Assembly (NCBI GenBank): GCA_033442325.1
Contig: JAWQFM010000033.1
Span: forward strand, 639,097 to 644,710
From: Salpingoeca rosetta
Lineage: Eukaryota; Protista; Choanoflagellata
Direction of reading: 5' to 3'
Length of the DNA: 5,614 nucleotides
Part shown: piece after piece, positions 484 to 5,614 of the stretch
Position numbering within the stretch: position 1 is the first letter of the stretch
How the letters are laid out: each line of letters starts with the position of its first letter
Program-made: the position numbers and the translations under genes
Notes under the pieces: generated by a model
Database searches by the model: none
What the model saw: only the letters and a program-made list of their open reading frames with translations
Told to the model about the DNA's origin: nothing

Positions 484-1301
484 TCAGTCGTACAGGGGGA
501 TGTCCTCGATGATGTTCTTGATGCGGCCCAGCAAATCACACGACTGCGGCAGCTTCGGGTTCATCCCGACCAGCACCACATGACCCTGCTGCTTCTCCTT
601 CTCCCCTTGCTTCCCCTCCCCTTGCTGCTGCTTGTGGTGGTGCTCGAGCTGTTTCAACGCGGCCAGCATGGCCTTCTTGGTTGCCCTGTGTGCCATCTGC
701 GGTGCCCTCTTGTAGAGTGCAGACCGGAGAACACACACGTAGAACATGGCGATCCAGTCATCCTCGATGTGACGTTCCACTCGCTCGTCACCAGCTGCAC
801 GGATGTGTGCTGACCGCTCAGGCAGGTCCGTACGAAGAGCAACCTCAGCCGGCTTGAGTTTGGCTGCCTTCATGACATCGGCGTCGCAGCCAGCCAGTTC
901 GAAGTCGATCAGAGAGGCTTTGTCGCCGCTCACGACCACATTGGCGCAGCGAATGTCATGGTGAACGAGACCAGCCGCTGACAGGAGAAACAAGCTGTTG
1001 CAGAGCTGCGCGACGTGCTGTTCGTGAATGTGAGCGCGGGTCGACCCGAGGTGGGGCACCGCAATCATCTGCGTGCCGTTGCCACTGCTGCTGAGGATGC
1101 TGCTGGTGGCGGTGTTGGTGGTGCTGCTCTTGCTGTTGGTGGCGGGGATGCGACTGCAAGCGCGTTGCCCGTTGACGTACTTCCACATGTTTTCAATCTC
1201 TTCAGCACGCAAGTCGCCAGCACGGTGCCCAGTCTTGATGAACTTGCACACGTATCCGCTGCCTTTGTTGGCGACGGAACTGAGCACTTTCGGTGCCTCT
1301 G
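484..1301 (-). CDS. Terminal exon: atypical Ser/Thr protein kinase-like domain (CR-kinase/FunK1-like)
   Basis: YVCKF beta3 Lys (1243-1245), EEIE putative alphaC Glu, catalytic loop HHDIRCAN (940-963), LIDFE (DFE at 898-906), HIEDDWIAMFYV alphaF-like motif (736-771), stop TGA 486-484. Tandem acceptor tgtCAGCAG gives an exon start at 1301 or 1298. Confidence 0.88.
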
Positions 1302-4300
1302 CTGACAGCACAGCGATAAGCACAACCAGCATCATGTGAATCACGCCACACACCAGCACAGGCACGGGCGCAATGGTGCATACAGCGCTGCACAGCGACC
1401 GCCTTTCAACCACACACACACACGCACACAGACAGAAGCAGAGAGAAATGGCAGAGAGACAGGCGCATGCATGCACACACACACACACATGCACACACAC
1501 ATACACACGCAGGCACACACACACACATACAGACGCAGACAAGCAAACAGCAAACAACACACCTTTGCCGCTGTTGGGGTTGAAGTGCAGCACATGGGGC
1601 TTCATGACATTCAGCGCAAAGTCGCTGCCATGCTTGGTGTTCTGCTTGATGGCGTGGGCGTACTTTGCGTGGAGGAAGCCCGCAAAGCAGGAAATGGCCA
1701 GAGCAGCATGCCCAATGTTCGTCGTTGGCATGGAAAGGATGTTGTGGGCAACCACCTTCACCACTCCACCGGCGTTGGCCACCATAAACTCCACCACGGT
1801 GGTCTGCACCGGGCTGACACGCAGCCCAAACATCGCCAGCCCAGCGAGCAGCGGCAGCTTCTCCAGAGGCACGTGCTCGCCTGCAATGCGGTGCACGTTC
1901 GCCACAATCGCGTGGTGCGCGTACGCTGCCAACTGGCCAAGCGAGTCAGCATCCTCGCCTAGCTTGAGCTCAAACACGGCCCCTATTGTGTTTGTGTGCA
2001 GGTCCACCATCACAATGTCTATTTTGGGGCGGGTGCCTGGCTTGAACCTGGCCAACGCAAGGCGGCAAGCGCGACAAGAGCACGGGCAGGTTCCCTGTAA
2101 GAAGCCGGCATTCGCAGCACCACAAGCATCACAGGGCACGCGAGGAGAGCGGGAAAAAAGGAGGACACAGCAAACACCCCTCCAACGACTGAGCACAACA
2201 TGCACCGCACAACGTACGTCATGATTGGGACCTCACTCGGGAACATGACCCAGGCTCCGAGGCGCAAAGCCATGGCGTTGAGGTGCTGAGCGATATCGGT
2301 ACGCATCTCCGCTTCGTTGGCCCATCCTGTTGTCAGCAGTTCTTGTGAAGACACAGCTGCAAGCACGCTTACTGTGATTTGATGTTATGTGCATGTGTGT
2401 TGGCAGGGGTGAGATGCAAACGTGCACACATTGCACGATGGTGTCATCACAATCACATCTCACATCACAACCCCTCATGTGCGCTTGCGCACACATCGGC
2501 AATACACGACCAAACACCACATGATGATGACAACGTTGACAAACGCTCCAAGGCCCAGTACACGTGTCTGCACGTGCACTTGAAACTGAAAGCAGTGCAA
2601 ACACAGGCAACAACAGTCTTCGCCACGTCCTTACCTTGTGGCAGGTCAAGCGTCACTCGGTCCTCGCGGGGGCGGTGTGGGTCGGCGCTGGAGACCAGCA
2701 GCTGTTCGATTTCGTGAATCTTTGCAATCACTGCTTGTGGCGTGATGTCATCAGCCTTCAGCTCAAACTGGAAACGCGATAACAAGCACGCATGCACACA
2801 CGCACACATGCACATACACACGAGTGTGTTGACACAAAGGCGTGCGGGACGGGCGGTTGGTGAGAGGCATAGGGAGGAGTGCACATATGGCGGCACGTCG
2901 TGTAGTGGTGAGTGGTGATGATAATGACACCAAGCACATGACACACACACACACACACACAAGCACACAGTCGCACACAAAAAAGCACATGCACGCACCT
3001 ACATACACGTACACAAATACACACGCACACGCACAGAAATGAGCACAGCACTACTGTTCCACCAGCACCGCCCGCACACACAGCGCAGCGGCGACGGATG
3101 TCATTGCATTGCAGCACCTGTTTCGCGAGTGGCTCTCGCCATATGTCGGTGAAGAACTGGGCATTGTCCGGCCAGTAGACGAGATACGGGTTCTTCTCGG
3201 GCTTGGTGATGCTGCTTGGTGGCGTCATGAAGAAGAATTCTGCACACACACACACACATAGCAGTGCAATCAGCGCGCATGAGGGGCGGAGAAGTGTCAA
3301 AACAAGCGTGAATGTGTCGCATGCGTGACTATGGTGGTGGAGGCTACCAATACAAATGCCAACGACAGTAACTGTGACACAGTGACAAAGGCAGCTATAA
3401 TTGCAGTGACAGTGATAGTGGCAGTGACAACGACGATACAAGCAAACGTGTTGTGCGCTGTGTGACATCAACGCAAAACGTCATGCACATACAAACACAC
3501 GCGCAAACAGGTGCACACATGCCCGTGTGTCATCAAGACAACCAAAACAAGCAGGGCCGTCTTCATCACCACATCCGCACGACAACACACAAAGAGGTGG
3601 ATGACAGCATACCGTCTCTGATCTCGGCGGGTGAGCTGATCTTCTTCTCCGCAACGCGCTTCTCGATATCTTGGAGAGCAGATAAAGTGATAGTGGCCAG
3701 TCGGGGCGGGCCAGCGGCGGCGGGCACAAGGCCGGCCTCCCACGCTGTCGCCAGGGCGTCGTCCACCACCTGTGACACCACAGTCCACCGGTGCTCGGCA
3801 CTTGTGGTGTGTGGCAGCGGCTCACCTGCCGCCTGCAGCAATGTCGTCAACGCGCGCACCCACACTTTGTGTTGCTGTTGCTGCCACTTCTTCCTCTCTT
3901 CCTCTCCCTTCTTCCTCTCCTCCTCCATCTGCTTGCGCCATATCTTCTTTTTTTCCTCAAGCAGGGCCAATTCCCGCTCTTTCTCTTTCACCTTCATCTC
4001 CGCCGCTGCAACCGCTTCTTCGTTGCCGGGTCCTGTCAGTTCTGCCCTCAATCTTTCATGCCGTGCATTGCCGATCTCGCCTTTCTTGTCATTGATGCGT
4101 TTCTTGAATAGGTCTTCGTCCTCCTTCACTTGCTCGGCATCGCGCTTCACCCTCTCCATCTCCGCCTTCATCCTCTCCACCTGTGCCTGCGCATGCATCG
4201 CCCTGATCTCGTCATGTCCCGCCTTTAAAGCGGCAAGCTGTTGTTGTGCGGCCTGCAAGTCATCTTCCAGTTCTCGCAGCACGCACTGCATTTTGACGTA

Positions 4301-5614
4301 CTCTGAACTGTCTTCATCCAGGGCCCATCTCTCCAGCAGATGGAGCATGTCATCTCCCCTGTTGCTGCCGCTGCTGCTGCTGCTGCTGCTGCCTTGCTGC
4401 TGCGCGCATACTTGCAACTGCGTAATGGTCGCAAACTGCGTGACTGCCTCCGTTATGATGGACGCCTGTGTATGACGGTGGTGTTGTGACGGTGGGGTAA
4501 GAGGTGATACCAGTCTGTGGCGGGGGGTGTGAGGGGGTGGGGGATTCGGTTGCTGCATCGCAAGGCAGTGCTGTGTCAATGTGCTTTTGTGCATGCGCAA
4601 TTGCAGAACCTTGGAGGCCACGCGGGTTTCAGTTCGCTTCAAGTCTCTCTGAAAAGAAAAGACGGGGGTGGATATTATGCACGAGAACATGAGGTGGGTG
4701 CGGGTATGAGCAACATCGTGGCGGAAGCCGAAATCACAGCACGTGTTGTGGTGATTGCACCGTGGTGGTGGTGGTGGTGGTGGTTGCGACGATGGTGATG
4801 GTTGGTGGCTGCGGTGGTTGTTGCTGTCTGTGGTGACTGTGGTCGGTGGTTGACGTACCTGTTTCTGGCTGTTGCGTGAAGCCAGCTGGTGTCGACAGAA
4901 CGGCGTTGTGGTGGTTGAAACGGGTTGGGCAGAGAGTGTGGGTGAGTACAGGAGCACAGAGGGTGAATGCAAACACTACACACACAAGCGCACACAAGCA
5001 GCTGTGTTGCAGAGGAGAAATGATAACGGCACTGTGGTGGTGGTGGCTGCATTTGTTGCGGTGGTTGTTGCTGTCTGTGGTGACTGTGGTCGGTGGTTGC
5101 CGTACCGCGCTGTTGCGTGAAGCCTGCTGGTGTCGACAGAACGGCGTTGTGGTGGTTGAAAGAGGTTAGGCAGAGAGTGTGGGTGAGCACAGAGGGTGAA
5201 TGCAAACATCACACACACACACACACACACACACAAGCAGCTGTGTAGCAGCGGAGCAATGATAACGGCACTGTGGTGGTGGCTGCACTGTGGCGGCGTC
5301 GATAGTGATGCTGGTCTGCTTCTGCTGGCAGGACGAACACGTGTATCATGCAATCCAGCTTGTACTCGACAGACCATTAACACCTGCTGTTTCCGCTTAC
5401 CCTTGAGCAGGCCTGCTTATGTGCAACAGCACACAATTCAAGGAACGACACGCACAGAGCAGACAGAAAGCAAGGAACATGTTGTGTTGTGTTTGAATGA
5501 GATGCAATGGGCAGGGGAGTGTGTGTGTGTGTGTGCTGTGGCCAAGTGAACGTGCAACACAGCAGCATGGTCGCATTCCTTTGTACGTACTGCGTTGAAT
5601 GTCGCAGACCTCAT
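484..5614 (-). CDS. Multi-exon gene: coiled coil + PD-(D/E)xK (REase-like) nuclease + atypical protein kinase; Crinkler/CR-effector-like architecture. Proposed join (minus strand): 5614-5591, 5412-5401, 5126-5106, 4885-4859, 4648-4610, 4465-3613, 3239-3118, 2767-2635, 2356-2218, 2047-1563, 1301-484 (about 890 aa)
   Basis: Manual splicing of five separate ORF-track fragments via GT..AG introns with matching phases. Core six exons total 2550 nt (divisible by 3) and end in TGA at 486-484. Nuclease and kinase motifs are in frame. The five 5' micro-exons are tentative; an alternative start is the in-frame ATG at 4348 (MLHLLERW). Confidence 0.8.
1302..1562 (-). other. Spliceosomal intron (261 nt, phase 1, TG-repeat rich) at the nuclease/kinase boundary
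   Basis: GTGTGT...CAG; translates as low-complexity CVCVC in the ORF track; length is a multiple of 3 with no in-frame stop. Confidence 0.8.
1471..1530. repeat. Imperfect (CA)n microsatellite in intron
   Basis: atgcacacacacacacacatgcacacacacatacacacgcaggcacacacacacacatac. Confidence 0.9.
1563..2047 (-). CDS. Exon carrying the catalytic core of a PD-(D/E)xK endonuclease-like domain
   Basis: KIDIVMVD (Asp at 2017-2019), AVFELK (1963-1971) and GQLAAY (QxxxY, 1921-1935), followed by alternating hydrophobic strands. Acceptor ttggccAG at 2048-2050 (phase 2); donor AAAG|GTGTGT at 1562 (phase 1). Confidence 0.85.
2048..2217 (-). other. Spliceosomal intron (170 nt, phase 2)
   Basis: GTACGT...CCAG; removal joins the two halves of the nuclease domain in frame. 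Confidence 0.8.
2218..2356 (-). CDS. Exon encoding the N-terminal helix and first strand of the REase-like domain (VSSQELLTTGWANEAEMRTDIAQHLNAMALRLGAWVMFPSEVPIMT)
   Basis: Acceptor cttgcAG (2357-2359, phase 1); donor AC|GTACGT at 2217 (phase 2) matches the next acceptor, giving SEVPIMT-FKPGTRPKIDIV. Confidence 0.8.
2357..2634 (-). other. Spliceosomal intron (278 nt, phase 1)
   Basis: GTAAGG...TGCAG with matching phases. Confidence 0.8.
2635..2767 (-). CDS. Internal exon (FELKADDITPQAVIAKIHEIEQLLVSSADPHRPREDRVTLDLPQ)
   Basis: Acceptor tttccAG (2768-2770, phase 0); strong donor AAG|GTAAGG at 2634 (phase 1). Protein-like composition between TG-repeat introns. Confidence 0.8.
2768..3117 (-). 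other. Spliceosomal intron (350 nt, phase 0)
   Basis: GTGCTG...TTCCAG; contains TG microsatellites (e.g. 2941-2961). Confidence 0.75.
3118..3239 (-). CDS. Internal exon (EFFFMTPPSSITKPEKNPYLVYWPDNAQFFTDIWREPLAKQ)
   Basis: Acceptor (tg)n-tgcAG (3240-3242, phase 1); donor CAG|GTGCTG at 3117 (phase 0). Confidence 0.78.
3240..3612 (-). other. Spliceosomal intron (373 nt, phase 1)
   Basis: GTATGC...(TG)n CAG with matching phases. Confidence 0.78.
3613..4465 (-). CDS. Large exon encoding a Ser-rich patch, an E/K/R/Q-rich coiled coil (about 3872-4291) and a helical linker
   Basis: Part of ORF 3566..4972; highly charged helical sequence (LRELEDDLQAAQQQLAAL...KEKERELALLEEKKK...EEERKKGEEERKKW). Donor ACG|GTATGC at 3612 (phase 1). 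The 5' boundary (acceptor cacAG at 4466-4468) is less certain. Confidence 0.8.
4610..4648 (-). CDS. Putative 39-nt exon (RDLKRTETRVASK)
   Basis: Strong polypyrimidine acceptor cttttcttttcAG at 4649-4651; weaker donor AAG|GTTCTG at 4609; phase 0/0. Confidence 0.45.
4762..4784. repeat. (GGT)n/(CAC)n trinucleotide run
   Basis: gtggtggtggtggtggtggtggt. Confidence 0.85.
4859..4885 (-). CDS. Putative 27-nt micro-exon (LASRNSQKQ)
   Basis: Acceptor caccAG at 4886-4888; strong donor CAG|GTACGT at 4858; phase 0/0. Confidence 0.45.
5106..5126 (-). CDS. Putative 21-nt micro-exon (QASRNSA), paralogous to 4859-4885
   Basis: Acceptor caccAG(CAG) at 5127-5129; donor GCG|GTACGG at 5105; lies in the second copy of the tandem duplication. 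Confidence 0.35.
5210..5235. repeat. (CA)13 microsatellite
   Basis: Perfect CA run, longer than the interrupted counterpart near 4978-4995 in the other duplicate copy. Confidence 0.9.
5401..5412 (-). CDS. Putative 12-nt micro-exon (ACSR)
   Basis: Acceptor aagcAG at 5413-5415; strong donor AGG|GTAAGC at 5400; phase 0/0. The exon's 5' boundary is uncertain. Confidence 0.3.
5591..5614 (-). CDS. Putative first coding exon (MRSATFNA)
   Basis: ATG at 5614-5612, 24 nt open, then donor GCA|GTACGT at 5590 (phase 0). Upstream context lies outside the window. Confidence 0.45.

Follow-up and report, generated by a model that had tools for sequence, protein, structure and literature searches.

In Ire1 and RNase L a kinase or pseudokinase is fused to a nuclease and activated by oligomerisation; the nuclease part, the KEN domain, is an all-helical RNase and does not have the restriction endonuclease (REase) fold. 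[quoted passage not shown] For the Crinklers (CRN), a further source reports PiCRN8 of Phytophthora infestans with a REase4 domain and defines the oomycete proteins by the N-terminal motifs LxLFLAK and HVLVxxP or the Crinkler N-terminal domain, which is ubiquitin-like (Ubl) (PMC11064341). CRN homologues have also been reported from free-living eukaryotes (PMC12957317). Here we present the analysis of a gene of Salpingoeca rosetta, contained in a stretch of 5614 bp (the window) that corresponds to about 634.5-640.1 kb of scaffold GL832987.1 in reversed orientation. An initial annotation, made from the sequence alone, had proposed that this gene encodes a PD-(D/E)xK nuclease of REase fold fused to an atypical kinase and had likened this module to the Crinkler/CR effectors.

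Direct reading of the strand gives a single intron-rich gene on the minus strand of the window. The public model is a protein of 796 amino acids (aa), XP_004988878.1 or EGD79650.1 (P0001 in the following), named ‘serine/threonine protein kinase’. Behind this label we tentatively see, with slightly less than an even chance of being right, a large intracellular protein restricted to choanoflagellates and composed of a coiled coil, two short conserved exons, a PD-(D/E)xK domain and an adjoining kinase, the nuclease being active in those copies that carry the ExK motif. The features of the window are as follows.

484..4291, minus strand: annotated coding region of six exons (match to P0001 and sum of exon lengths)
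3613..4291, minus strand: exon 1, extended stretch of helical or coiled-coil character (aa 1 to about 154) and a conserved helical segment (model, coiled-coil-type matches)
3118..3239, minus strand: exon 2, 40 codons, without variation among the seven paralogues (direct reading, alignment)
2635..2767, minus strand: exon 3, 44 codons, two sequence types among the paralogues (direct reading, alignment)
2218..2371, minus strand: exon 4, helix with conserved Glu (NEAEM, 2318-2304) and putative first strand of the nuclease-like domain (reading, model, alignment)
2048..2217, minus strand: intron of 170 nt, GT..AG, splitting the nuclease-like domain (direct reading; position common to the relative L001)
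1563..2047, minus strand: exon 5, putative PD-(D/E)xK core and about 120 further residues of the domain (motifs, conservation in L001)
1302..1562, minus strand: intron of 261 nt, GT..AG, rich in (TG)n, in the glycine-loop region of the kinase (direct reading; spliced out in the public model)
484..1301, minus strand: exon 6, divergent eukaryotic-type protein kinase by its motifs and profile matches, and Q/K/E-rich tail, with a TGA stop codon at 486-484
4411..5614, minus strand: probable small 5' exons of the same gene, unannotated (tblastn with paralogue N-termini)

The exon translations were 100% identical to P0001 in a protein search. The six exons of 679, 122, 133, 154, 485 and 818 nt add up to 2391 nt, which gives 796 codons and the stop codon, and all are bounded by GT..AG with compatible phases. 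The S. rosetta gene set was refined by RNA sequencing under eight conditions, and 98% of the genes are supported by transcripts, a genome-wide figure (PMC4054682). The two introns placed by the initial annotation at 2217-2048 and 1562-1302 are identical to those of the public model; the sole difference is the acceptor of the exon with the conserved helix, which lies 15 nt further upstream in the public model (2371 instead of 2356). The expectations that the DNA came from a choanoflagellate-type genome and that databases would list a hypothetical protein or a kinase only were also borne out, by S. rosetta as the source and by the public label.

The nuclease-like domain comprises about 190 aa (aa 325-505, approximately) and lies directly N-terminal to the kinase. 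The linear motif set of the PD-(D/E)xK superfamily is present in the right order and spacing: a helix with Glu (NEAEM, 2318-2304), a hydrophobic residue followed by Asp (KIDIV, with the Asp codon at 2019-2017), ExK (FELK, with ELK at 1971-1963) and QxxxY (QLAAY, 1935-1921). The coordinates given in the initial annotation for the Asp and the ELK were exact, and the residues it quoted are all present. The 3' end of exon 4 reads ...IM followed by ‘ac’, and exon 5 reads FKPGTRPKIDIVMVD...AVFELK...GQLAAY.

Database searches were made with single exons, with the open reading frame (ORF) of 573 aa left unaltered (region search), or with the database record P0001. With exon 5 as query, phmmer found the S. 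rosetta cluster and only one other protein, P0008 (42% identity, E=1.4e-18), which is located on L001, a metagenome contig of 1761 bp from ENA. At an overall identity of 68 of 161 residues (42%), the five exon 5 residues D10, E26, K28, Q38 and Y42 are all identical in this relative; the chance of this is about 1 in 80 if positions are assumed to be independent. When exon 5 is compared with L001 in windows of eight residues, each of the three motif blocks ranks within the top six for conservation, and a locus scan independently selected the motif blocks as the most conserved stretches. In exon 4 the Glu residues are kept in both sequence types that occur among the paralogues. The ratio of nonsynonymous to synonymous substitution rates (dN/dS) in exon 5 is 0.30-0.53 among four genomic copies, and values of 0.3-0.5 indicate that the domain is under constraint. 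A strict D / ExK / QxxxY pattern with hydrophobic context occurred in 40 of 200,000 composition-preserving shuffles of the protein (2e-4) and a loose one in 1.6% of them, frequencies that serve as a guide only as the pattern was defined post hoc, a point to be held against the nuclease.

In both AlphaFold runs NEAEM...HLNAM is modelled as a helix, KIDIVMVD and IGAVFELK are modelled as strands, and QLAAY falls within a long helix; the run with the domain alone adds a further strand over LLAGLAM. In the latter run the order of elements, in exon 5 numbering, is strand (8-15), strand (20-28), helix (35-55) and strand (71-77), so that Asp opens one strand, ExK closes the strand after it and QxxxY sits on the helix that comes next. 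The Glu-bearing helix corresponds to aa 331-346 of the whole-protein model and precedes the elements with D and ExK. This predicted order fits the beta-beta-alpha-beta core of REases. Given the motifs, their conservation in one relative and the order of predicted secondary structure, we regard a REase fold as plausible and somewhat probable; the probability given to the fold is the sum of those given to an active and to a non-catalytic domain.

By its motifs, exon 6 encodes a divergent eukaryotic-type, non-RD kinase with a complete set of catalytic residues, which is probably active. Canonical order and spacing are found for the beta3 Lys (VCK, 1251-1243), the helix-C Glu (EEIEN), HxD..N (HHDIRCAN, 963-940), DFE (906-898), the PE motif (LPER, 825-814) and D-x-W (DDW, 762-754), and the catalytic residues are kept in all seven S. 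rosetta copies and in L001. Matches of single sequences on the catalytic loop remain below threshold (APH 5.5e-4, Pkinase 0.025, Bud32 5e-5, and RIO). Pfam Pkinase (PF00069) reaches 14.4 bits with the window and 18.8 bits with L001 and PF07714 (PK_Tyr_Ser-Thr) 13.1 bits, against gathering cut-offs of 31.7 and 23.1 bits, respectively, which are thus not reached; the PD-T4-6 kinase models of PADLOC give E values from 1e-5 to 5e-7. A profile of two sequences (A3, from the window and its relative) matched PknE (1.2e-4) and MAPK11 (1.6e-4) in PDB, with alignments spanning helix E, HxD..N, DF[GE] and the PE motif. The kinase of the initial annotation is thus confirmed by the complete motif set and by matches to solved kinases at E=1e-4, and the word ‘atypical’ was a fair description of its divergence.

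On L001 the encoded parts (P0008 and P0010) follow in the same order, first the nuclease-like part with 39% identity (42% in the phmmer search with exon 5) and then a kinase ORF with 35% identity to exon 6. An AG acceptor stands directly before the homologous Y-K...DIVM exon of L001, at the same position and phase as in the intron at 2217-2048. As judged from these alignments, both the two-domain architecture and an intron have been preserved in a relative that has clearly diverged. The Lys of ExK is present in L001, P0001 and P0002 and is changed from AAG to ACG (Thr) in P0003-P0007; since it is present in the distant L001, Lys is taken as the ancestral state. The non-coding parts of L001 (1-60 and 1600-1761) contain simple repeats of the (CT)n and (CA)n type, as do S. 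rosetta introns. The contig is suggested to originate from a related choanoflagellate. Scans of IMG/VR and of JGI metagenome contigs with the nuclease alignment delivered no relatives, and the kinase alignment, used as a search profile, recovered nothing beyond the kinase of L001 itself.

Several results weigh against a nuclease. Neither exon 5 nor P0008 nor the whole protein matched a nuclease family of Pfam, NCBIfam, PHROGs or PADLOC, even with E values up to 10, and none of the paralogues matched one. Single-sequence and profile queries found no nuclease among the PDB sequences, Foldseek comparison with PDB gave a best E of 0.07, template modelling (TM) scores of at most 0.27 and no nuclease, and an exhaustive phmmer search of exon 5 in 1.84 billion representatives found only the family itself. 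ELT replaces ELK in five of the seven S. rosetta paralogues (P0003-P0007), and the two best-conserved blocks of exon 5 (residues 67-74 and 114-121) lie outside the motifs. The predicted local distance difference test score (pLDDT) of the AlphaFold models is 40.3 for the whole protein and 49.9 for the domain alone, the latter with a predicted TM score (pTM) of 0.48, and the two models disagree over aa 424-470. The refuting outcome named in the initial annotation, a segment with no predicted REase fold, has not occurred, as these models are too poor to count for or against the domain. What stands of the REase domain of the initial annotation is a real linear motif set, with five residues kept in a relative of 42% identity; the profile and PDB sequence searches yielded no nuclease. 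PD-(D/E)xK domains are known to escape detection by sequence profiles, and the same is said of the REase domains of CRN (PMC11064341). The region ahead of the kinase could alternatively be an orphan, lineage-specific regulatory or scaffold domain, in which case the motifs would be a chance likeness in a conserved alpha/beta domain and the protein a plain divergent kinase with a coiled coil. Such a domain would agree with the negative outcome of every profile, sequence and fold search for a nuclease, with the similar constraint retained in the five paralogues with Thr, with the position of the most conserved blocks and with the occurrence of the loose motif in shuffles, given that many windows were scanned for the initial annotation. 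We nevertheless hold it for rather unlikely, because none of the five testable motif residues varies at an overall identity of 42%, because their order, their spacing and the predicted secondary-structure elements that carry them are as expected, because the strict pattern is rare, and because domains of this superfamily are known to evade profiles. A genuine REase fold without catalysis, serving as a sensor that binds nucleic acid or another ligand and controls the output of the kinase, would make the Lys of ExK dispensable. REase domains that are inactive and serve for binding occur commonly in the superfamily, the five copies with Thr remain under constraint in the other parts of the domain, and the catalytic residues of the kinase are intact in every copy and in L001. 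This sensor is improbable in our judgement, as Asp, Glu, Gln and Tyr are kept in all copies and Lys is kept in L001 and two S. rosetta copies, a pattern which suggests that the chemistry is still selected in part of the family.

A very improbable explanation is that of a bona fide Crinkler/CR effector, that is a toxin, secreted or delivered, with homology to the CRN8-type modules of oomycetes and aimed at other cells. The domain order is that of the CR REase-kinase C-termini (PMC5289972), the REase4 domain reported for PiCRN8 (PMC11064341) and the CRN homologues reported from free-living eukaryotes (PMC12957317) are in line with it, and the family is multi-copy, clustered and mosaic. None of the membership characters examined was, however, found. 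Profile searches gave no match to the Crinkler N-terminal domain in any of the seven paralogues and none to Pkinase_fungal (FunK1, PF17667), with E values up to 10 for P0001 and P0005 and up to 0.1 for all seven; P0001 contains no LxLFLAK, even with one mismatch allowed, and no N-terminal HVLVxxP. No named CRN was among the matches of the sequence and profile searches, which cannot see very distant relatives. The longer paralogues show no hydrophobic N-terminus when inspected by eye, and the genes are flanked by ordinary duplicated genes (Mito_carr, sulfatase, EB1) and not by transposons. Membership in the Crinkler/CR effectors, to which the initial annotation had likened the module, is therefore not supported by the sequence. 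The only string similar to HVLVxxP is HVLHFNP (window 1590-1570, aa 514-520 of P0001), which differs by one mismatch and lies between the nuclease-like and the kinase domain; as a CRN junction motif it was rejected and is taken as chance, due to its internal position and to the reading HVLRILTP in L001.

The preferred reading, a coiled-coil protein with a PD-(D/E)xK domain and a kinase, leads to the following proposal. The protein would assemble via its coiled coil, and the nuclease-like domain, most likely of the RecB/Cas4-like PD-(D/E)xK fold as far as the motifs tell, would bind nucleic acid, with cleavage by the copies that retain ExK. The adjoining kinase would gate or report the activity of the nuclease, by the same logic as proposed for the CR REase-kinase modules. 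Only two S. rosetta copies, the window copy among them, carry the complete D/E/K set, and the five ELT copies may act as nuclease-dead partners or regulators. A role in biological conflict or defence is speculative; the REase-then-kinase order and the clustered mosaic family are its two supports. An extended version, which is improbable as a whole, sees a choanoflagellate family of kinase-coupled REases that shares no descent with Crinkler effectors and functions in conflicts within the cell (antiviral, anti-parasite or cell-death), diversified by exon-level recombination and with nuclease-dead regulators of two active copies.

The predicted helices of aa 2-154 are the only part of the whole-protein AlphaFold model with a pLDDT of 60-83, and exon 1 gave low-score matches of the SMC and Fez1 type, which are typical of coiled coils. 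The N-terminal coiled coil is likely an oligomerisation module. Exon 2 has no Pfam match and contains no known domain. The public model, which starts with the ATG at 4291-4289, is probably truncated at its 5' end: in tblastn the N-termini of the paralogues P0005-P0007 match the window at 5324-5235, at 5433-5386 and from 4648 downward. The 5' part of the gene contains a direct duplication of about 240 bp (4810-5043 and 5057-5282, 87-98% identity), each repeat with a small segment resembling an exon (…QPPPQ.RYH.S.ATQLL) that corresponds by homology to aa 39-68 of P0006, and the gene may extend beyond the edge of the window. An Rfam scan of the window gave no match.

The intron at 1302-1562 is free of stop codons and has a length that is a multiple of three, so that the ORF of 573 aa (484-2205) reads through it. 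Its retention would add 87 residues rich in Cys and Val at the glycine loop of the kinase with the frame intact. The open, in-frame state of this intron is accidental.

Seven copies of the gene, P0001-P0007, are present in S. rosetta, with 73-93% identity across the two C-terminal domains; the paralogue expansion for which the initial annotation had suggested a search thus exists. Five of them lie within 66 kb of GL832987.1.

572.5-576.6 kb of GL832987.1, plus strand: copy
584.3-589.5 kb of GL832987.1, plus strand: copy
603.4-609.1 kb of GL832987.1, plus strand: copy
619.8-624.4 kb of GL832987.1, minus strand: copy
635.0-638.8 kb of GL832987.1, minus strand: copy

The copies of the cluster are interleaved with repeated genes of the Mito_carr, sulfatase and EB1 type, which points to segmental duplication and not to transposition. 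A link to transposons was rejected, as the flanks of the five copies show these duplicated genes and long assembly gaps and no transposase. According to the alignment, the copies are mosaics at the level of exons. By the last digit of their identifiers they group as {1,2,6,7} and {3,4,5} by the type of coiled coil, as {1,3,6} and {2,4,5,7} by exon 3, as {1,3,5,6} and {2,4,7} by the helix of exon 4, and as {1,2} and {3-7} by ELK or ELT. These discordant groupings suggest recombination or gene conversion among the copies of the cluster. As judged from the searches, the family is confined to choanoflagellates.

Each of the loci L002-L006 (GL832987.1, 562-649 kb) contains 1-10 kb of N. The gene of P0007 has two runs of N, and its shortened nuclease-like region is possibly an artefact of the assembly and not a real deletion. 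P0002 and P0006 hold stretches that resemble translated intron, which suggests mis-annotation.

Some further candidates were rejected. Exon 5 contains NTKHGSD (window about 1640-1620), which resembles the active-site motif of nucleoside diphosphate kinases (NDK) and gives weak NDK matches in Pfam (E=0.011, 16 bits with a cut-off of 27), NCBIfam and PDB; it is absent from L001 and is regarded as chance. Exon 5 is also not the N-lobe of a kinase with FELK as the beta3 lysine, as exon 6 itself supplies a VCK lysine, located about 90 residues ahead of HHD and preceded by the loops NPNSGK and GSG. The match to P0009, a repetitive bacterial protein of 1287 aa (E=1e-4), is spurious and driven by repeats. 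The metagenome loci L007 and L008 encode bacterial Ser/Thr kinases of high GC content that match in the catalytic loop only and are not relatives.

Choanoflagellates are the closest unicellular relatives of animals. If the REase domain is real, the sister group of animals has a family of nuclease-kinase fusions that is publicly labelled only as kinase, and a choanoflagellate case joins the eukaryotic REase-kinase proteins, still few in number, for which a role in biological conflict is assumed. The clustered mosaic paralogues with ELK and ELT would then be a natural series for the regulation of such modules. Should the domain prove not to be a nuclease, the protein is an ordinary lineage-specific divergent kinase of local interest only.

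Among known systems, the bacterial defence kinases PD-T4-6 and the small archaeal/eukaryotic kinases of the Bud32, RIO and APH type give the best profile matches to the catalytic-loop region of the kinase. They differ in that these matches are limited to some 40-50 residues around HxD..N/DFx, far under the curated cut-offs; the PD-T4-6 and Bud32 matches, being short and weak, reflect general protein-kinase-like similarity and not membership in these families. RecB/Cas4-like PD-(D/E)xK nucleases (PDDEXK_1 and relatives) have the same signature as the nuclease-like domain, with QxxxY on the next helix 10 residues after ExK. Unlike in these nucleases, the fold is putative here, with no profile match at the thresholds tried and no Cas4-type Cys clusters. 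Ire1 and RNase L share the concept that a single chain joins a kinase-type domain to a nuclease and includes an oligomerisation module, but their order is reversed (kinase, then KEN) and they have no sequence relationship to the protein described here. In contrast to CR effectors, this protein has a long coiled-coil N-terminus, no Crinkler/Ubl header and no evident signal peptide, S. rosetta is a free-living bacterivore, and five of the seven copies are without the Lys of ExK. In common with CR effectors the genes form a multi-copy, rapidly reshuffled family, sequence comparison detects the nuclease part only with difficulty, and, as in CR C-termini (D2 region of CRN8), a domain with REase-type motifs stands directly on the N-terminal side of a protein kinase. 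The gene is a lineage-restricted variant of a known architecture.

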